The notes under the pieces: model-generated | Told to the model about the DNA's origin: nothing | Database searches by the model: none | What the model saw: the letters and a program-made list of their open reading frames with translations, nothing else | From: Selaginella moellendorffii | Lineage: Eukaryota; Plantae; Lycopodiophyta | Length of the DNA stretch: 64,000 bases | Direction of reading: 5' to 3' | NCBI RefSeq assembly: GCF_000143415.4 | Contig: NW_003314266.1 | Coordinates: 518,463-582,462, forward strand | Part shown: positions 9,218 to 32,479 of the stretch, piece after piece | How the letters are laid out: every line of letters begins with the position of its first letter | Position numbering within the stretch: the stretch's first letter is position 1 | Position numbers and translations under genes: made by a program

Positions 9218-10094
9218 ATTATAAAAAATAAAATTAATCTAAATGAATAACAACTATCAGATGGTATATTCACAACTATTTAGTCCCTTTACAAGTTTGC
9301 TTAAACAAACTAAAAATCACAATTGCAAAAATAATATATACTAAACTCTAGATTATCTGGGATTGCAATAAATCTAATAAATTAAAACAAGATTAATACT
9401 TAACAAGTATTAGAATAGTTCAAAGACAAAGATTTTCCAAGGCCGGAATCTCGCTACTCTCTCCCTTGACACATCCGCTCTCGCCCAGCCTCGGCCCAGC
9501 CGCTTCCCCCTCCACAACCCTGTCCTCCTCCACACCGCCGCCATTCCTCCGCCCATCCACCACCACGTCTCGCCCTTCCTCGATCAGCCCCCCAGCGAGC
9601 GTATCCACGCAGCTCCGTCCCTCTCGTCCCTGCTGCTCGCGCGCGGCATCGTCTACCAGTGCGTCCTCCCACTGCGTATAGCCAGGGATCGGAGCTTCAG
9701 CGCAAGGACCAGGGCTGCCTTCATCATCGTCATCGCCAAACACTGCCGATCGGACCTTCTGCGCCGCAAGCCGGAATGCTTCCTGGATCGAGAGCGAGGC
9801 GAATGGATTTACTCGATCGATCGGGCGAGATAGAGATAGAGATTATCCTTACCTGGATTCCATCGGGGCTCAATGCCGTGTCCTCCAGACCCGCATCCTC
9901 GATCCGTGGAGGCTTCACGGATGACAGCAATCCTCCAGCTGCTCCTGCGGGAACTTCCATTGAATCGATTGCGAGAGATCGCGAGGGTTTCAAATGCCCT
10001 AGCTCGCAATCCCAGCCGTCCAACCACGAACGGTTAACTGCTGCACACGTGGCTACATTACTTTAAAACGCCGCGAATTTTAGGGTTCTTGGAG

Positions 10095-11201
10095 ATGATC
10101 ACTGTTTTCGTGGATGTAGATGATACGCTCGTGTTCTTCAATCCGGAAGGGAAATTCTGTGTAGCGGGAGATACCGAGGGCCCTTACGAGCTCGTGCATG
10201 GTGGGAAAGAGTTCTTGCAGGCGCTGCGATCCATTCCAGGTTTGCAGCTCAATTTCTTTAGCGGCGGCCCGAGATCCAGGAACGTCGGCCTCGTCGATCA
10301 GATCCTCTGCGACGCGTTTGGTGATGGAGAGTGTGGCAAAATCAGGGTTTTCTCTGCGGAGGATCTCTTGCAAGGGGATCCTCCCAAGAAAAAGCTCGAG
10401 GGCTTGATCGAAGGGATCGATCTAGAGCAAACAATGGTGGTGGATGACACGGCCTATCACTACGCTGCGCCGGGAGAGGAAAGGAATTTTCTTCAGATCT
10501 ACGCGTGCTACTGCGAGAAGCACGATCACTACGCAGGCAAGGTGTTTATCATGTGGCGCGACAACAATCTCATCCGTGCTCTCGGTCTCATCCTGTGGGC
10601 TTTGGAGATTTCCAGTTCCGAGCCCTGCTCGCCGGTGGATGCCTTGTCTTTGCTCCAGTGGGGATCGTCATCCGGGGACGATGACTATCGCCACAACGCG
10701 ACCAATTCCCAGAGGGTCTACGACTTGGGATTGGAGGCAATGCGGCGAGTTAATCCGGATCTGGAGCTTCTCGATCGGGAGAAGCTCGGGATCTATCCCT
10801 GGTCGTGCGAGCTTCTAGAGGCTCTCACCGGCGAGCAGGACTCCCACTTTGGCAGCACCAATCTCTTTGACAAGGATCAAGTTGAAAGGGTCCGGTTGAG
10901 CTTGTCTCCCGTGTCGAGGGTAGCGATCGATCCAGCTCCATCGCTGTTGGTGGGAAAGGACGATGCGGCGGAGGTGAGAATCCAGTGGATTGGCGAGGAG
11001 AAGGAAGCGATTGGAAAGCAAAAGCTTGTGAAGCTCCCAATTGGGACGACTGGAAAGGTGGCGAAGGCAACGCTGGAACACATTCTTCCAGTGGAATCTG
11101 GGGTGCTCATGGTTGAGCCATGGGACGAGGTTGACGACGTCGAGATTCTAGATCATACTCACTTGTACACGTATGAAGGCTGCAAGATTTCCTTGTTTTG
11201 A
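10095..11201 (+). CDS. HAD-superfamily (NIF/FCP1-like) phosphatase-domain protein, intronless
   Basis: Motif I VFVDVDDTLV (DxDxT), motif II FFSGG, motif III K (PPKKKL), motif IV MVVDD. Confidence 0.75.
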   Translation: MITVFVDVDDTLVFFNPEGKFCVAGDTEGPYELVHGGKEFLQALRSIPGLQLNFFSGGPRSRNVGLVDQILCDAFGDGECGKIRVFSAEDLLQGDPPKKKLEGLIEGIDLEQTMVVDDTAYHYAAPGEERNFLQIYACYCEKHDHYAGKVFIMWRDNNLIRALGLILWALEISSSEPCSPVDALSLLQWGSSSGDDDYRHNATNSQRVYDLGLEAMRRVNPDLELLDREKLGIYPWSCELLEALTGEQDSHFGSTNLFDKDQVERVRLSLSPVSRVAIDPAPSLLVGKDDAAEVRIQWIGEEKEAIGKQKLVKLPIGTTGKVAKATLEHILPVESGVLMVEPWDEVDDVEILDHTHLYTYEGCKISLF

Positions 11202-11673: not shown

Positions 11674-12719
11674 TCACGATTGAGCTGCCGTGGTAGAGGT
11701 GTTAAGAGCTACGTCAACAAATTTCCCATTTTGCTTGGGCAACTCAATTCCACTCTCCAAATCCGGGGATTCACTCTCTTTGGCTTCCTTCTCGTCGGGC
11801 ACCTGCCACGTCAGCAAGTTACCAGGCTTGTAATATATGTAGTGGCAAAAGAGCTGGACGGCGCCTCCGGCTAGTCCAAGAACATTGGGAACCTGAATTG
11901 AGCAAACTTCGTGGTTAATTCCCTATAAATATTACTGCAAAATCTTACCAGTATGTAAATGTCGTGCTTCAAGAGTGCGTACACAAACCACAGGGCACTG
12001 TTGATGAAGACGGTCAAGCACAGGTAAAAAGGTAAGAACTCGACACTTTTGGTCTTGAAAATCCGGTACTGCAAGACAGAGGATTTGTGATTAGCGATGA
12101 TAACAAGGAAGGTTAAGGTTTTAATCCGCCAACTTACCATCACGGACAAAGGTGACCAATACATTGCGATGTTGAGGACGATGCAAAGAACTCCAAAGAT
12201 TGTAATCCTCGTGTCCTTGCTATGGATTCCGAGACTTATGCCAAAGCCCACGGCCGCCATGAGCGCCAAGCACGAAAACGTATAAAGGGATGTTCTTTTC
12301 TGCAAATTCAAAGGGGGCAAAGTTGGCAAAGAATCGATCACCCTTAAAACAAATCCTTACCAATGCCTTGGGCGATTTCCTCGCGTAGAACAAGAAAAGC
12401 AAGACGTAGATCACGTTGAGAACCGTCCCAAGCCCATTGATGGTGACGACCAGCATTGCGTTTTTGTTGATTGGCGAGCCATACAGAACCCAGAGAATAC
12501 AATTTAGGAGTGAAGCGATATAGGGCACCGATGAGAAGGATTCCGTGGATTTCTTCTTTGCAATCCTTATGAAAGTGAGTCTGCAATGGCAAAGCAAGAA
12601 TCAGATTGGGAAAAGAGGATCATAGCAAGAAAAAGAGTGAAAACATACATCGAAGACAAGAACATCAACGCTGCAACAACATTCCCAGCCACTCCAATAA
12701 TCGTTGCTGCGATCGCCAT
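11674..12719 (-). CDS. SWEET: SWEET (MtN3/saliva) sugar transporter, 5 exons
   Basis: GVAGNVVAALMFLSS/ILTFIRIAKKKSTESFSSVPY, WVLYG, VTINGLG, MYWSPLSVM, TKSVEFLPFYL, VPNVLG; stop TGA at 11674-11676. Confidence 0.93.
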
Positions 12720-16714: not shown

Positions 16715-19465
16715 TTATCTTCCTTGAGGATTGACGAGCTGGGAGAAGACCGCGCTGGCGGAGGCGTCCTCCGAGTAGCCATCGTAGTAATCGTCAGTAA
16801 CTTCGCTCGCGGTTCGCTGGCTCTCGTTAGAAGCTTGCCCAGGCGCTTGACGAGCGCTGATTGGAACACTAGAAGTAGCACCACCATTCTCCACCGCCCC
16901 AGCCGCCGGCGCCGCTACTCCACCGCCAGCATCGCCACCAGCACCACCATTCTCGCGTCCAAATCTCCTCTGCGCGGCCTCCTGGATGTGCAGCGCCGAC
17001 TCGAGGTTCCACAGCACATCGCCCATGCTCGGCCTCTGGACGCCATTCTCTTGCAAGCACTTGTCCGCGGTCTCGCCAACTTTCCTCACCGACGCCATGT
17101 CCGCGTCCTCGTCGCTCCCGGGCCTCCGCAGCGTCGGGTCCAGTATCTCCTCCAGCCTCCCGCTGCGCTGCGCGCTCATCGCCCACTCGGCGATGTTAAC
17201 TTGCTCTCTCGGCAGCGCCGGATCGATGGCGGGACGCGCGCACATCACCTCCACCATCACCACTCCAAAGCTGTACACGTCCGACTTGTCCGTGAGCTGC
17301 TGCCGCCGGAAGTACTCCGGATCCAGGTACCCGAAGCTCCCCTTCACGGCCGTGGAGACGTGCGTTTGATCCAGCATCGGCCCCGTCTTGGACAGCCCAA
17401 AGTCGGACACTTTCGCCACCAGCTGCTCGTCTAGAAGGATGTTGGTGGTCTTCACGTCCCGGTGGATGATCGCGGCTCCGGTGTGGAGGTAGTGCAATCC
17501 CCGCGCCGCCCCGACCAGGATCTCCAGCCGGTGCCGCCAGGAAAGCGGCTGGAGATCCTCCGTGCCGTAGAGATGGCCGCGGAGAGGCCCCCGGGCCATG
17601 TACTCGTAGACCAGGATCATCTCCGACTGCTCGTCGCAGTAGCCGATGAGAGAGACAAGGTGGCGGTGGCGGAGCTTGGACAGGAGCCCGATCTCCGCCT
17701 GGAACTCGGCTATGCCTTGCTCCGACCTCGGGTTGCCGCGCTTCACCGCCACCTCCAGCGTGCCATTGTCGATCTCGCCCTTGTAGACGCGACCGAATCC
17801 TCCCACGCCGAGGAGCCTTGCCTCGTCGAAGCTGTTCGTGGCCTCGGCGATCTCCTGGAGCGTGAAGTAGCGGCCGTGGCCTCCGGCGCTGGCAGCCGAG
17901 CCGGCATTGTAGTAACTCCCGGCGGCACTCCTGGGCGAGCCGGCTCCCATCGTGGAGCCGAGCGTGGTGAGTGAGAAAGCATGGTGGTGGTGGTGGGGGT
18001 GGCCGTTTCCCAGAGCTTGCCAGGACGAAGCGCTCGGCTTCTTCCCGCCACCTTTGCAGCAGCGGAAGAAGAAACCAATCGCGAGCGCGATCGCCACCAG
18101 CGCGAACACCCCGCCAGCGACGCAGCCGATTATCACACCGAGGTGGTGGCCGCCGTTACCGCCACTGTCCGAGCTCCGCGGCACCACAGCCAGCCCATCC
18201 ACGCTCCCGGACGAGTCGTTGAGCCGGAAGATCTCCACGCCGTTTAGAATCGCGTCCTGGACCTGGCTGTTCGATCCGGTGAGAGGCCCAACTTGGAGCC
18301 GGAGGTTGGCGAGCCCGTCCACTGGAAGAACCAGGAAATCTCGGTAGTAGGGAGTGTTGGCGGCGCCGGTTTGCTGGATCAAATCTAGAGCTCGGATGGC
18401 TGTCCGGTTGTTGATGTAAACGCTGAAGATCCTTTGCATTGGAGAGCTGTAGACGAGCTCCGCGAAGTGGAGGCGGACGTAGTGGGCATAGCCGGGCGCG
18501 ACCGAGAACGCCCACGAGATGTTAAACGCGTTTGTGACGGTGTTGGAGCCGCCCAGGGACCGCGCGGTACCGTAGACGCCGCGCGGCGCAATGTACTCGG
18601 GCACCGTGGCCGGGTAGACGATGTCCGGTACCGCCGGCGGCACGGGCACCCCTCGCGCGACTCCTTGGAGGAAGGGCTCGTCCGGCAGCCACGTCCGGGC
18701 CTGGGAGGAGGAATCGTTGCCCGGGGCGATGAGGTCCCCGCCCACATTGAGGCGGTAGAGCGTGCGCGCCAGGATCCCGGCGATCTCCACTTGCCGGCTC
18801 TCGCTGGCCTCGGGCGAGATCTCCACGACGCTGGGCGACAGCGCGTCGCGCGCCATGGAGATGAGCTCGATGCCGCTGACGAAGGCGATGAAGGAGGCGC
18901 TGGGGGTGAGCGTGACGGCGACGGCGGTGCCGCTGGTGTGGATCGTGAACTCCCTCACCACCGGGCTCGATCCATTGCCGGCGGCAATGTCTTCCGCGAT
19001 GCTGGAGTTCGCGATGAGCAGCCGCGATCCAATCGCGACCGAGAAGCGCGCGCGCGAGGAGGCGTCCGCGAGAGGGGCGAAGTGGAGGCGGACCCAATGC
19101 CGTCCCGGGCTGATGGAGAAGCTATAGCTTGCCGGGCTGGTGAATACCCGTGCCGCGCGGTATGGGACGGAGGTACCGCTCGTACCGCGCGTACTGTTGG
19201 TCGGCGTGCCGCCGGCAACAAGCCTGGGATTCTCGGCATCGGGCGTCCATTCCAGGCCATTGCCATCGATGGCGCTGCGCGATTCCCCACAGCTGATCCT
19301 AAACACATCCTGTGGCTTCCACTGCGCGCTGGATCGGCCCAAGAGCGCGAGGAAGGAGGCGAGAACGATGAAGAAGAAGAGGGGATGATCTGGGCGAGAA
19401 ATTGGGCGATTCCCTCGATCAATTCTCATCTGGGCGGCTAGAATTCGCATACCTGTGACCCGCAT
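16715..19465 (-). CDS. CrRLK1L receptor kinase (malectin-like ectodomain; THESEUS1/HERK-like), intronless
   Basis: RISCG, RLHF twice, YRLNVGG, RTWLPD, DAILNGVEI, a TM segment, GVGGFGRVYKG, HRDVKTTN, HVSTAVKGSFGYLDPEYFRRQQLTDKSDVYS, C-terminal VFSQLVNPQGR. Confidence 0.95.
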   Translation of the reverse strand: MRVTGMRILAAQMRIDRGNRPISRPDHPLFFFIVLASFLALLGRSSAQWKPQDVFRISCGESRSAIDGNGLEWTPDAENPRLVAGGTPTNSTRGTSGTSVPYRAARVFTSPASYSFSISPGRHWVRLHFAPLADASSRARFSVAIGSRLLIANSSIAEDIAAGNGSSPVVREFTIHTSGTAVAVTLTPSASFIAFVSGIELISMARDALSPSVVEISPEASESRQVEIAGILARTLYRLNVGGDLIAPGNDSSSQARTWLPDEPFLQGVARGVPVPPAVPDIVYPATVPEYIAPRGVYGTARSLGGSNTVTNAFNISWAFSVAPGYAHYVRLHFAELVYSSPMQRIFSVYINNRTAIRALDLIQQTGAANTPYYRDFLVLPVDGLANLRLQVGPLTGSNSQVQDAILNGVEIFRLNDSSGSVDGLAVVPRSSDSGGNGGHHLGVIIGCVAGGVFALVAIALAIGFFFRCCKGGGKKPSASSWQALGNGHPHHHHHAFSLTTLGSTMGAGSPRSAAGSYYNAGSAASAGGHGRYFTLQEIAEATNSFDEARLLGVGGFGRVYKGEIDNGTLEVAVKRGNPRSEQGIAEFQAEIGLLSKLRHRHLVSLIGYCDEQSEMILVYEYMARGPLRGHLYGTEDLQPLSWRHRLEILVGAARGLHYLHTGAAIIHRDVKTTNILLDEQLVAKVSDFGLSKTGPMLDQTHVSTAVKGSFGYLDPEYFRRQQLTDKSDVYSFGVVMVEVMCARPAIDPALPREQVNIAEWAMSAQRSGRLEEILDPTLRRPGSDEDADMASVRKVGETADKCLQENGVQRPSMGDVLWNLESALHIQEAAQRRFGRENGGAGGDAGGGVAAPAAGAVENGGATSSVPISARQAPGQASNESQRTASEVTDDYYDGYSEDASASAVFSQLVNPQGR

Positions 19466-28757: not shown

Positions 28758-29152
28758 TTATTGTCCTCGTATATCTAAGGTGGTCCTCGAGCAATTTGCA
28801 CACTGCTTGCAGAGGTCGCACTTATCCTTGCCCAGGTCCTCTCGCAAACTGCGCATGTCCTCACCCAGTTCCTGGTGCAGTTTGTGCAGCTCCTCACTCA
28901 GTTTTTTGTGCAGGTCCTCGAGCAAATCCTCGCCCAATTTGCGCAGGGCCTCCAGCAACATCTCGCCCAAGTCCACAGTCTCGCTACAAATCAAAAGTCA
29001 ACCAAAGATGAGGAACAAACAAACTTACGTGATGGGTGGATTTCATTCACACCCTTTAACTTGCAGCCGTCTTCGAACACTCTGCAGTGCTGTGTCATGG
29101 GACACCAAGATGTTAACAGTAGTAGTGCTATCATTAAAAGTATTTGATTCAT
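28758..29152 (-). pseudogene. Frameshifted copy of the small coiled-coil gene at 43340-43735
   Basis: One base shorter (ggg vs gggg at ~29034) before the intron, so exon 2 is out of frame. Confidence 0.4.
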
Positions 29153-29159
29153 GTTAGTC

Positions 29160-29440
29160 GAACAGCCATGAGCTCCTGCTGGGCAAAAGCCTGGAGGATC
29201 GAATTCCACGAGAAAATGTCCCTGTGTGGCATCCCGGGGAAGAAGAAGGCCGCGTAGGCCTCGAATTGCGTTGCCTCGGAGAATGCCTGTAAAAGGTCTG
29301 GATTCGCGGTGTAGACGGCCTCCGCATCCCTCCATTTGCCATACATGTAACGATCATGTTGGAGAGGTGTCGATTCGGCCAGTAGCTGGTCTCCAGGATC
29401 CGCGCGTGGATCCTCCTGGCGTGAGCCAAATCCCTGGCAG
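29160..29440 (-). pseudogene. PPR gene fragment
   Basis: ARRIHARIL..NRHLSNMIV and MPHRDIFSWNSILQAFAQ in different frames. Confidence 0.7.
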
Positions 29441-30485
29441 ACCCTGTTCATACAGGGCCGCGGGATGTCGTCCACGTGAACAGTCAGATGGATTCCAAAG
29501 ATTCGCATCTTTCTTTGCATTGCAAATCTAATGAGACGGGAACTCCTTCACTGTCTTGGTGTTGAGCACTGCAATCCGATAAATCCCTGTCTCAGGATCT
29601 ACATTCATCGTCTCAATGCTAGAGCATCTTCCAAACTGTTTGTGAGCAGATTGGCCACAGTGAGCGAGAGGCAGAGAAGTGGGCTCGAACGGGCGGCCGG
29701 AGAAAGGATGCACTACTTCCTGAGGCAATCTAGAAACGAGCGAAAGAAATGCAGTACCAGGAGCGGCACCACCACGCGCATCCACATAGGCTGTGGACAT
29801 CGAGTCGCAGGAATATGCCCATGAACAATTCTTCCTCATCGACCCGATCGAAGGCCCATCGCCATACTACCTCGCGATAGGGAGAAAGAGAAAATATGTG
29901 GAAACTTTTGGGGGACAAATCCCAGAGCGCCTACGAAGGAGTGTGTCTGTGTGGATGTTTGTGAGTTGGGCCCGTTTCCGCACTATTCTACGTTGACGCT
30001 GCCGACAGGTGACACATGTAACTTCATGAACACCTGGGAAACTAGCGAAAACATCTGTGTGTTTATACATGCGCTGATGGCAGCGCTCATCATTCTAAGT
30101 TTTGATTTGATCATAGAATGTTATTTGTTGTGATATTTAGCTGTCCAGAATCAGACCTGCGAGCTTGCGGCTCCTATATGGAGCTGCATCCCTCTTTTGT
30201 TCATCTTAAGTTACTAAGTTTGTAGGCTCGACCTGGTTGGGAGTCTCACTTACTGAGAAAAGAAACTGTAAACTAAGAGTGCAAGATTTCCCAGCGCTTA
30301 CTTGATTGCTCATCTTTCCACTTTGGTTTGCAACAAATTGTTGCTGTTTATTTTTTCCACTTTTCTTGCCTGATTTCTAGAACTTCGGATAGCAAAGAAA
30401 TGACCGAAGAATCATTTGCTTCCAATCTCAGACATACCGTCGTATATATATCTTTCTAGTTGTTTTGAGAAGATTAAAAGTGCGC

Positions 30486-30872
30486 TTAGCAACCAGTGAC
30501 ATAATCCGCCTTGAACTGGCAGCCGTCATTGTAAGTCTTGATACCACACTTGCCGCAGTTACGAGCACGGAGTTCGTCAAAGGCAGTGATCATCTCAGAG
30601 CCATTGAGGTCGCAGTTGGAGCCAGAGACAAAGAGGCCACAGTGGCCAGAGCAGACGCCGCTGGAGCCTTTGTTGCCGCCGGTGAAGTAGCGGTTGCTAG
30701 GCTGAATCTGGCGGCGAGCAGCATCACAGTCGCTCTGTGCGAGATCCTTGCACAGTGTAGAGCCAGCGCACGAGAAGGAGTCCTGAGCATGAGAGCCTTG
30801 CAACAACATGATGATCATGAGATTCACAACAAGTAAGACATTGAGAGCTAGCGCCATGCTCGTCGACTTCAT
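30486..30872 (-). CDS. Secreted 10-cysteine KP4 killer-toxin-like protein (128 aa)
   Basis: Hydrophobic signal peptide ending SHA-Q. Mature part has CAGSTLC, VCSGHCGLFV, NCGKCG and ADYVTGC*, resembling KP4 CxGSxxC, CxxCG and NYVxxC. Intronless. Confidence 0.72.
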   Translation of the reverse strand: MKSTSMALALNVLLVVNLMIIMLLQGSHAQDSFSCAGSTLCKDLAQSDCDAARRQIQPSNRYFTGGNKGSSGVCSGHCGLFVSGSNCDLNGSEMITAFDELRARNCGKCGIKTYNDGCQFKADYVTGC

Positions 30873-32479
30873 GGTTACTAAGTTACTGATAGATCTCGAG
30901 CCCATTATTTGTATGGTGTGGGCTGGCATAGAAGCGGGTCTAGCTTTGCTTCCAGCAAGACTTCCAAAACTTAGGCGGTCAAGGAGGAACCCATTTATTA
31001 ATGCATACAGGTCACAACTTGACGACTTTCACATAGATGGACACGTAGAAGAAAGTTCTATAGAAAGCTTCAGTTGTATTTTATTAAAATCTCATTTGTC
31101 TTGTTAAAAATTTGCTCTTCTGTCACCGGCAATAGTGTTTATACATATCAGCTCGATCTACATTGCCGAGCCACCGAGTCCATTGGCAGGCTAATGGCCT
31201 CATTTTGATCATAATATCCAGTGGCATTTTCGAATTGTCCTTAGGAATAGTATTAGTCAAGATCTAAATAGGTAATACATATATATATACATACATATAT
31301 ATGTTATAATTATATATACACTTAACTAAATAATATTAAGAGGAGAAGCTTGTAATATCAGCTTTCATACATAGTTACAGGAGTCATTGTAAAAAGAACA
31401 TTAATCACTGTTTGGTGTTGGGTGTGAGGAGTATATGTACACAGGACTGGGGGGTCAATTTTCTGGGCTCCAGAGGATCTGCCAAAGCTTTTGCTACCAG
31501 GAATTGAACTTGGGTCTCTTGGGTGAGCGTTGAGTATCATGAAGATTATCTTAACTGAATAAAACAATTCCATCATTGCCGCAGTTGAATCCTGAATGCC
31601 CCTCAGATCCAATGCACATTCCAAAGAGAGAGCTTTGCTTGCCCTTGCCTTGGGAGCGGCCTTAATGGGCTGTGGCAACAGACACATGGAATAACATTAT
31701 TCAAGGATGAGAGGGTTTTCTAGAACCTGGCAGTTGTCAGCCATGTTCTCATAGAGAACCTGACTTGATCTGATGGCTGCCAATTGCTAAATCTAGTTAA
31801 CAGGCGAGCCACAGCCTGTTAATGTAGGAGAGTGTATCGGGAGTCAATTGTCTACATTCTCCAGTACAATTCAGGGAAGTGGGTCATTGAATCCATGACT
31901 TTTAGCTATGTCCAATCTTGGCTACAACCAGAGCTTTAAGGGAGAGGATCACTTCTATAACCTAGACACCATGCGTTGGAGTCGGCAAGCAGTGAGCCAG
32001 GATCCATTCGGCTACTAGGACTGCAACAAGTATCCAATATGGTATGGAGGCCAGAGGATTTCATTGGTATACAGGGAAGCTAGAGAAGGATGAGGAGCTT
32101 GGTAAATGGGTCACCCTCAGCCATGGTCACATCTGGGAAATACTAGTGGCCACTTTGTGACATCAACATGGAAAGTGAAGAATGGATGGCTTATTTTGTG
32201 ATGGTAATTTTTTGTGTCTTAGTTTATATTATGGTGTACACCATAAAAATGCAGCTGTCATTTATACTATTACCATCTCATCTGGTTGCCGAAGAAACCC
32301 TACTTCGCTTTTATACATTAGATCCAAATGCCTTTAATCTTAGCCTTCTTGACGTTCAATCTAACAACCCTAAACCTTCGTCTTTCGCTAAGCTGTTCAA
32401 ACGAACATGTGGAACCGAGGGAAAGCCCGGAAGTTTAGCTATTGCGCTAAGATCACCCTGATGTCAAGAATATGGTCAG

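Follow-up and report, generated by a model that had tools for sequence, protein, structure and literature searches.

Does a small cysteine-rich reading frame in the genome of the lycophyte Selaginella moellendorffii encode a relative of the killer toxin KP4, and, if so, how did a plant come by it? The question arises from a 64,000-nucleotide stretch of contig NW_003314266.1 (assembly GCF_000143415.4, positions 518,463 to 582,462 of the forward strand), referred to below as the window. An earlier inspection of its letters alone had proposed a secreted, KP4-like antifungal protein derived from a fungus. The best explanation overall, to which a probability of about 0.55 is assigned, is that the gene is of fungal origin, belongs to a land-plant clade of the MU117 family with the KP4 fold, and encodes an apoplastic protein that would act on tip-growing cells.

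The gene and its product

30486–30872, minus strand: complete intronless coding sequence (CDS) of 128 codons and a TAA stop for a secreted-type protein predicted to have the KP4 fold (open reading frame list; MU117, PF15474).
30786–30872, minus strand: predicted signal peptide, residues 1–29 (by inspection; cleavage after S-H-A).
30489–30785, minus strand: mature domain, residues 30–128 (Q30–C128, 99 amino acids), predicted alpha/beta sandwich of the KP4 type (model confidence and fold matches).

The reading frame starts with an ATG at 30872, stops at 30488–30486, and specifies a product of 128 amino acids. By inspection, residues 1–29 contain a basic MK n-region, the hydrophobic core ALALNVLLVVNLMIIMLL, and S-H-A at positions −3 to −1. 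The equivalent N-terminus directly precedes D(S/T)(F/Y)SC in all plant homologues, and in the AlphaFold2 model this region is a lone helix (residues 7–23) of low confidence. Secretion via an N-terminal signal peptide is predicted from the hydrophobic N-terminus and the S-H-A motif. The only NCBIfam match, to FtsL, is confined to the signal peptide and is spurious.

The protein has exactly ten cysteines (C35, C41, C49, C74, C78, C87, C106, C109, C118, and C128), none of them outside the mature part. Three motifs stand out: C35-AGSTL-C41 (CxGSxxC), C106-GK-C109-G (CxxCG), and D123-YVTG-C128 (DYVxxC). All of the sequence features listed in the original prediction, from the intronless frame and signal peptide to the cysteine count and motifs, are present at 30872–30486. 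The gene has a single exon, as do its homologues in nine other plant genomes. The reading frame is not due to chance, since it matches Pfam MU117 with an E-value of 7e-18 and has 31 database homologues with E-values down to 1e-71. The genes on both sides are ordinary plant genes, so the locus is resident plant DNA. Contamination is ruled out by these flanking genes and by paralogues on other S. moellendorffii scaffolds.

Family assignment and predicted fold

Pfam gives one match for the protein, MU117 (PF15474), which scores 65.8 bits where the gathering threshold is 30.4 and extends over residues 34–128 and profile positions 2–105 of 105. The match to this family, which is named for the S. 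pombe meiotically up-regulated gene 117, is therefore full-length, and the pattern of ten cysteines is that of the fungal members. The family was studied in two alignments: A1 contains 31 sequences, 30 plant or plant-like and one fungal, and A2 contains 59 plant and fungal domain sequences. All 25 invariant columns of A1 are kept in the window protein. The cysteine framework can be written C.GS..C ... C ... G.C.G.CG.F ... C ... C..CG ... GC ... YV.GC, and the window protein has all ten positions. Nine of these columns are invariant in A2, and the tenth is conserved in at least 90% of the sequences.

All 59 sequences of A2 match MU117, and 27 of them match the Pfam Kp4 family (PF09044) as well, with a best E-value of 2.2e-7. 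The two families are therefore linked, yet the window protein is not a member of the Kp4 family, in keeping with the reservation made from the outset that it might represent a divergent subfamily. The nearest cluster in the ESM Atlas is named 'Killer toxin Kp4 domain-containing' and mixes PF09044 and PF15474 (score 0.93). A fungal PF15474 cluster was assigned to KP4 structural Group 3 by de Guillen et al. 2025 (PMC12382754).

Positions 3–105 of the A2 profile align with residues 3–105 of KP4 (1KPT) at an E-value of 0.037, which is not significant alone. The alignment is collinear from end to end, with about eight of the ten cysteines coinciding; three disulfide bridges like those of KP4 and two particular to the subfamily would be expected. 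Common motifs stand in register, namely INC(K/R)GSS.C, GC..CGS, and (V/I)(N/D)YV..C, so that C.GS..C, C..CG, and (N/D)YV..C occur in both. In the same profile search, insect chemosensory proteins ranked ahead of KP4, with a match that was partial and looked like chance, and a sequence search of the PDB with the protein itself returned nothing at E-values up to 10. The E-value of 0.037 is not what supports the link to KP4; the support comes from the fold, the motifs that align in register, and the cross-matches in Pfam.

The AlphaFold2 model built from A1 has a mean predicted local distance difference test score (pLDDT) of 84.7, with values of 87–97 over residues 31–128. In an exhaustive structural comparison with 48,161 PDB representatives, the top match was the KP4 toxin 1KPT (Z 11.9, root-mean-square deviation 2.4 Å, 94 of 105 residues, 20% identity). 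Zt-KP4 (8ACX) was second, with Z 9.3 and 2.6 Å over 90 amino acids. A comparison with 1KPT in Foldseek gave an E-value of 4.6e-4 and a template modelling (TM) score of 0.70. There is a clear gap after 8ACX: the next matches have Z of at most 6.3 and are all lectins, namely the glycan-binding protein Y3 (6.3), an alpha-galactosyl lectin of L. decastes (5.6), DUF26/PDLP (5.5), and mannose-bound Gnk2 (5.2). It is well supported by the predicted model that the mature domain is superposable on KP4 as a two-layer alpha/beta sandwich, and the KP4-like nature suggested by the original prediction is upheld by the fold, the collinear profile, and the Kp4 matches of the relatives.

Origin of the land-plant clade

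The 31 homologues were identified in a word-indexed search. Those from plants are 56–90% identical to the window protein and come from liverworts, mosses, a fern, and scattered eudicots. Named genera include Riccia, Marchantia, Sphagnum, Ceratodon, and Adiantum, and the eudicot homologues from Artemisia, Apium, Ranunculus, Orobanche, and Cuscuta have identities of 70–85%. The only named fungus in this search was Microsporum canis (57% identity). An exhaustive profile search returned 144 clusters at 50% identity, about two of which are filled by plants. All 20 of the named non-plant representatives are fungi, from both Ascomycota and Basidiomycota. Neither algal nor other non-fungal, non-plant eukaryotic members were found among the homologues and named cluster representatives.

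In an unrooted maximum-likelihood tree of 73 domains, all plant sequences form one clade together with an unlabelled sequence, P0029 (support 99/95). The sister of this clade is Onygenales (98/94), and the whole group is nested among Ascomycota and Basidiomycota. P0029 is probably fungal because it carries a Kex2-type KR pro-peptide site. The gene of M. canis takes up 609 nucleotides for 159 codons and contains intron sequence, whereas the plant genes are single-exon. In M. canis and P0029, the two closest non-plant sequences, the domain is preceded by additional N-terminal residues, which are missing from the plant copies.

These sequence comparisons fit a gene of fungal origin that entered plants in one old fungus-to-plant transfer and then spread within them, as the earlier proposal of a fungal derivation had it. 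The portrayal of the gene as an isolated vascular-plant case did not survive: the clade spans land plants, which agrees in part with the outcome that the original prediction had named as refuting it, nearest homologues in a widespread, vertically inherited cysteine-rich family of plants. Judged from its sequences, the land-plant MU117 clade is single, highly conserved, and patchily distributed, and it is not a private acquisition of Selaginella. Between Selaginella and Riccia the non-synonymous distance (dN) is 0.09 and the synonymous distance (dS) about 1.4; across plants, dS is saturated and dN is small. These values point to strong long-term purifying selection on the plant clade.

Probable spread of the gene among plants

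Sequence stretches around the gene were compared for Artemisia annua (L004), Ranunculus cassubicifolius (L005), and Apium graveolens (L006), together with proteins P0182–P0187. The proteins of Ranunculus, Rhodiola, Euphorbia, Apium, and Tanacetum fall into one cluster at 90% identity, and those of Rhodiola and Ranunculus share 126 of 128 amino acids, signal peptide included. Differences at four-fold degenerate sites amount to 3/44 between Artemisia and Apium, 5/42 between Apium and Ranunculus, and 7/43 between Artemisia and Ranunculus. The NG86 dS among these eudicots is 0.12–0.23. The orders concerned split roughly 100 million years (My) ago or more, and genome-wide synonymous divergence (Ks) between them is near or beyond 1.

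The similarity extends beyond the coding sequence in Artemisia, Ranunculus, and Apium. Non-coding flanks can be aligned over about 85–105 nucleotides on the 5' side and 70–275 nucleotides on the 3' side at 80–86% identity, and an adjacent repeat of about 300 nucleotides can also be aligned between these genera at 80–86%. The repeat lies on both sides of the Ranunculus gene (L005:8310-8626; L005:11086-11193 and 12080-12305) and just downstream of the Artemisia gene (L004:10660-10888), with about 82% identity between Artemisia and Ranunculus. An insertion of about 890 nucleotides with terminal inverted repeats TAGAGCTGTTAA...TTAACAGCTCTA interrupts the downstream Ranunculus copy. The repeat may have belonged to the transferred segment; alternatively, it may form part of a unit of about 2.5–2.8 kb in a tandem array.

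The eudicot copies are located on chromosome-scale scaffolds, some of them in tandem. The second Artemisia annua copy, 2.5 kb downstream of the first (L004:12414-12918), is frame-shifted after ...GATGV, and CTI12_AA491140 (P0031, 100 amino acids) is its truncated product. The deposited 190-amino-acid model of Apium AgCh_040245 (L006:10001-10384) has a spurious intron; the genomic reading frame continues without a break to ...DYVTGC*, as in all other plant copies. The gene is also carried by the parasites Orobanche (three species) and Cuscuta.

Selaginella differs from the angiosperms at 14–19 of 40–44 four-fold sites (dS 0.62–0.73; window positions 30489–30782 compared with L004–L011), whereas the fern Adiantum differs from them at 30–31 of 39–41, contrary to the species tree. 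Approximately unbiased tests on 294 nucleotides rejected neither monophyly of fern and angiosperms (p 0.38) nor that of liverworts (p 0.11). The argument for plant-to-plant transfer is accordingly drawn from the synonymous distances and the flanks and not from topology. On this basis, transfer among eudicots, apparently recent, is probable, and an exchange between a Selaginella-like lineage and angiosperms is possible. That both took place, so that the gene has been horizontally mobile within land plants since one fungal acquisition, is regarded as an even proposition. It is possible that the eudicot route included Ranunculales, Saxifragales, Malpighiales, Apiales, and Asterales, with the parasites Orobanche and Cuscuta as go-betweens.

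Paralogues in Selaginella

29166–32286, no strand assigned: duplicated block of about 3.1 kb, the gene with about 1.3–1.4 kb on each side (blastn against GL377712.1, the SELMODRAFT_431177 locus).

The gene is one of at least four paralogues in S. moellendorffii, among them SELMODRAFT_431177 (90% identity) and a second annotated protein (82%). The blastn identity of the block to the SELMODRAFT_431177 locus, gaps included, is 87–90% and is limited to 29166–32286; the genes around the two copies differ. When only substitutions are counted, the two loci agree at 96.1% of positions in the CDS, at 97.7% downstream, and at 91% upstream. Carriage of the block by a transposon was rejected, as the block has no terminal direct or inverted repeats and its reading frames contain no transposable-element domains. 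A short dispersed repeat at 29545–29660 of the window recurs with 82–85% identity in GL377687.1 (L002:3206-3334, 11718-11777, and 17682-17744) and may be an element resembling miniature inverted-repeat transposable elements.

GL377687.1 also carries two more paralogues (L002:4258-4641 and 10001-10381), which are oppositely oriented and separated by 5 kb that include an RPE65-family gene. In the 127-amino-acid member of this pair, V-Y-S replaces the conserved V-C-S, and DAACRQ contains a new cysteine. With one conserved cysteine lost and another gained, its disulfide framework is predicted to be altered. Older pairs of Selaginella paralogues have a dN/dS ratio (omega) of about 0.3.

Expression and promoter

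30291–30485, minus strand: probable 3' untranslated region (UTR), with the transcript likely to end near 30291 (contigs of three public runs).
30977–30982, minus strand: TTGACC W-box core, 105 nucleotides upstream of the ATG (motif; TTGACT in the paralogue).

Contigs from three public runs, whose library type was guessed to be RNA, match 30291–30776 with 0–1 differences, and none extends beyond 30291–30293. Between 30291 and 30485, the sequence has 99% identity to the paralogue. One run is true RNA-seq; only seven of its reads touch the stretch, and they diverge at 30743. The reverse complement of the loose read end translates to SCAGSTRCSG, a sequence specific to paralogue 429946. The reads thus belong to that paralogue, which shows that the family is transcribed; none of the seven reads in this run is specific to the window copy. 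Transcription of the window copy is weakly indicated by the short contigs.

The W-box that the original prediction had noted upstream of the gene is present at 30982–30977, but as a sign of defence regulation it was rejected. The window contains 64 copies of TTGACY against 78 ± 9 expected by shuffling, which is at chance level. The copies at −110 and −388 are kept in the paralogue promoter, which is 91% identical, as is expected from the recent duplication.

Proposed function and alternative explanations

By the proposed mechanism, the protein would be secreted to the apoplast as a disulfide-locked globule and would exert its effect extracellularly, at the surface of cells that grow at the tip, with fungal hyphae as the most likely target. 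If it resembled KP4, Zt-KP4-1, and the moss protein PpKP4, it would block Ca2+ uptake, inhibit fungal growth, or alter Ca2+ gradients, which are the effects described for the three proteins, respectively (PMC12382754). Antifungal action or calcium blockade would be an analogy with these proteins. The dN/dS ratio is very low across plants, which points to a conserved target and not to an arms race.

Several results weigh against this explanation. The window protein is unmatched by the Pfam Kp4 profile even at an E-value of 10, a search that the original prediction had put forward as a check. In the profile alignment, two KP4 cysteines are replaced by two others, the cysteine of CG.F and that of the GC before the last strand. 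Lys42 of KP4, which is reportedly needed for activity, faces a glycine (A-K-V-C versus s-G-v-C; G72-V73-C74 here), in a register that is uncertain at an E-value of 0.037. Because of the two cysteine positions and the glycine, the KP4 mechanism may not carry over. The literature search found no paper with tested activity for any MU117-type protein. Defence proteins tend to evolve quickly, whereas this one has hardly changed across plants. As the tree is unrooted, the fungus-to-plant direction is a matter of parsimony. The weak indication of transcription counts on the same side. So does the comparison with SELMODRAFT_431177, in which 13 of 15 differences in the CDS change an amino acid (omega about 1.9, not significant); selection on the young window copy may for this reason be relaxed or diversifying.

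Rather than blocking ion channels, the domain could be a carbohydrate-binding, lectin-like module that recognises fungal wall glycans. Working in the plant like ginkbilobin-2, it would bind mannan, chitin, or glucan of the hyphal wall and disturb growth. Fungal MU117 domains are repeatedly C-terminal in wall hydrolases: among ten long fungal representatives, three are GH18 chitinases (P0055, P0092, and P0102, one with a chitin-binding domain), two are GH71 alpha-1,3-glucanases (P0090 and P0126), and one is Spherulin4-like (P0131). The source records of some fungal members are named 'chitinase'. Because of these architectures and the weaker lectin matches that follow KP4 and Zt-KP4 in the fold comparison, the domain may bind fungal wall glycans. 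However, Z values of 5.2–6.3 are common by the comparison tool's own account, the search for residues that bind sugar identified none, the nearest structural relatives, KP4 and Zt-KP4-1, are not known as lectins, and the fusions speak for association with wall enzymes, not for binding. A lectin role, though a serious rival, is considered unlikely. It is less likely still that the protein has been domesticated to regulate cell growth in the plant itself from outside the cell, for example tip growth in rhizoids, root hairs, or elsewhere via Ca2+ gradients, with no part in defence. Conservation of nearly the whole mature surface over more than 400 My suits a self target better than an arms race, and KP4 itself perturbs root-hair Ca2+ (PMC12382754). 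Changes in Ca2+ gradients and in the development of protonemata are reported for moss KP4 genes (Guan et al. 2023, cited by PMC12382754 and PMC11228847). Against such a role, the family is absent from most angiosperm genomes searched and occurs in a handful of genera only, so it is not an essential regulator. Furthermore, PpKP4 belongs to the other subfamily (PF09044).

The history of the gene can also be read differently. If the window copy were a young redundant duplicate drifting to loss, its intactness would be due to youth and not to selection. The 13 non-synonymous differences against two synonymous ones accord with this, as do a dS to SELMODRAFT_431177 of 0.024, close to the 2.3% divergence of the downstream flank, the exchanged cysteines of the GL377687.1 paralogue, and true RNA-seq reads that can be assigned to another paralogue only. 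Nevertheless, drift is improbable: all ten cysteines and all 25 invariant columns are kept, the 13:2 ratio does not differ significantly from neutral expectation (binomial p about 0.3, calculated by hand from site counts), and exact-match contigs from three runs cover the CDS and 3' UTR. The proposal that plants had the family from their own ancestors, or passed it on to fungi, draws on the missing root of the tree, on the small size of the Onygenales sister group, and on the unlabelled sister sequence P0029. It is given very little credence in view of the shallowness of the plant clade, which fills about two of the 144 clusters. Fungal members extend across Ascomycota and Basidiomycota with deep branches and varied architectures, algal or other eukaryotic members did not turn up in the homologue and cluster searches, and the Kex2-type site of P0029 is typical of fungal secreted proteins.

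Comparison with known proteins

KP4 of Ustilago maydis virus P4 (1KPT, PF09044) is, like the protein predicted here, a secreted alpha/beta sandwich of about 100 residues with ten cysteines. It is encoded by a double-stranded RNA virus of a smut fungus, whereas the Selaginella gene is on a plant chromosome, and the two proteins are about 20% identical. Ca2+-channel activity is described for KP4, to which MU117 proteins are likened by fold and sequence. Compared with the plant proteins, which consist of a bare signal peptide and domain, are encoded without introns, and are far more conserved, fungal MU117 domains usually follow a longer N-terminal pro-region or are attached to GH18 and GH71 enzymes. 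Zt-KP4-1 of Zymoseptoria tritici (Zt-NIP1, 8ACX), the second-best fold match, is a secreted effector that inhibits fungal growth (PMC12382754). It comes from a fungal pathogen, has a domain of the Hce2/ECP2 type (structural Group 2), and is 9% identical to the window protein.

The PpKP4 genes of the moss Physcomitrium patens are the closest precedent in plants. They are described as plant-resident members of the KP4 superfamily attributed to fungal transfer, and their secreted products are reported to affect Ca2+ gradients and tip growth. They are reported in mosses only and have the Pfam Kp4 domain (structural Group 1), whereas the present clade is of the MU117 type and reaches vascular plants. 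As the plant MU117 clade is a separate branch from moss KP4, it represents a separate acquisition. The antifungal lectins of the ginkbilobin-2/DUF26 family (PF01657) have been listed among plant 'KP4' structural relatives (PMC12382754). They are plant-secreted, cysteine-rich alpha/beta domains of related topology (Z 5.2–5.5), but with this weak structural score, no sequence relation, and the cysteine pattern C-8X-C-2X-C they are a different family.

KP4 is a classic antifungal killer toxin and has been used as a transgene for smut resistance in wheat, maize, and tobacco (PMC12382754). Land plants appear already to carry a KP4-fold gene of their own, from another subfamily than the moss KP4 genes and reaching vascular plants. 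The nearly frozen sequence makes it an attractive candidate for antifungal testing, which could help to show the role of MU117 beside fungal chitinases and glucanases. If true, the spread from plant to plant would be a compact, traceable example of a functional gene crossing kingdoms and plant orders. The literature search found no paper that names the locus tags of these genes and none that links KP4 to Selaginella or Marchantia genes of the MU117 clade. As far as searched, the plant MU117/KP4-fold gene is apparently unpublished, whereas KP4-superfamily genes of fungal origin in plants were already known.

Other features of the locus

30873–30929, minus strand: in-frame upstream extension with alternative ATGs at 30929 and 30905 (reading frame listed as 30486–30929, 147 amino acids).

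The annotated S. moellendorffii paralogues begin at the position equivalent to 30872. The neighbouring genes in the window encode PORR, malectin-like receptor kinase, PPR, RCC1-kinase, P450, 2OG-dioxygenase, and O-methyltransferase proteins. Rfam has no match anywhere in the window. A reading frame of 123 amino acids at 29149–29520 on the minus strand, within the duplicated block, has no Pfam match. Its C-terminal part resembles a PPR-motif fragment (DIFSWNSILQAFAQ), and it is probably a gene remnant inside the block.

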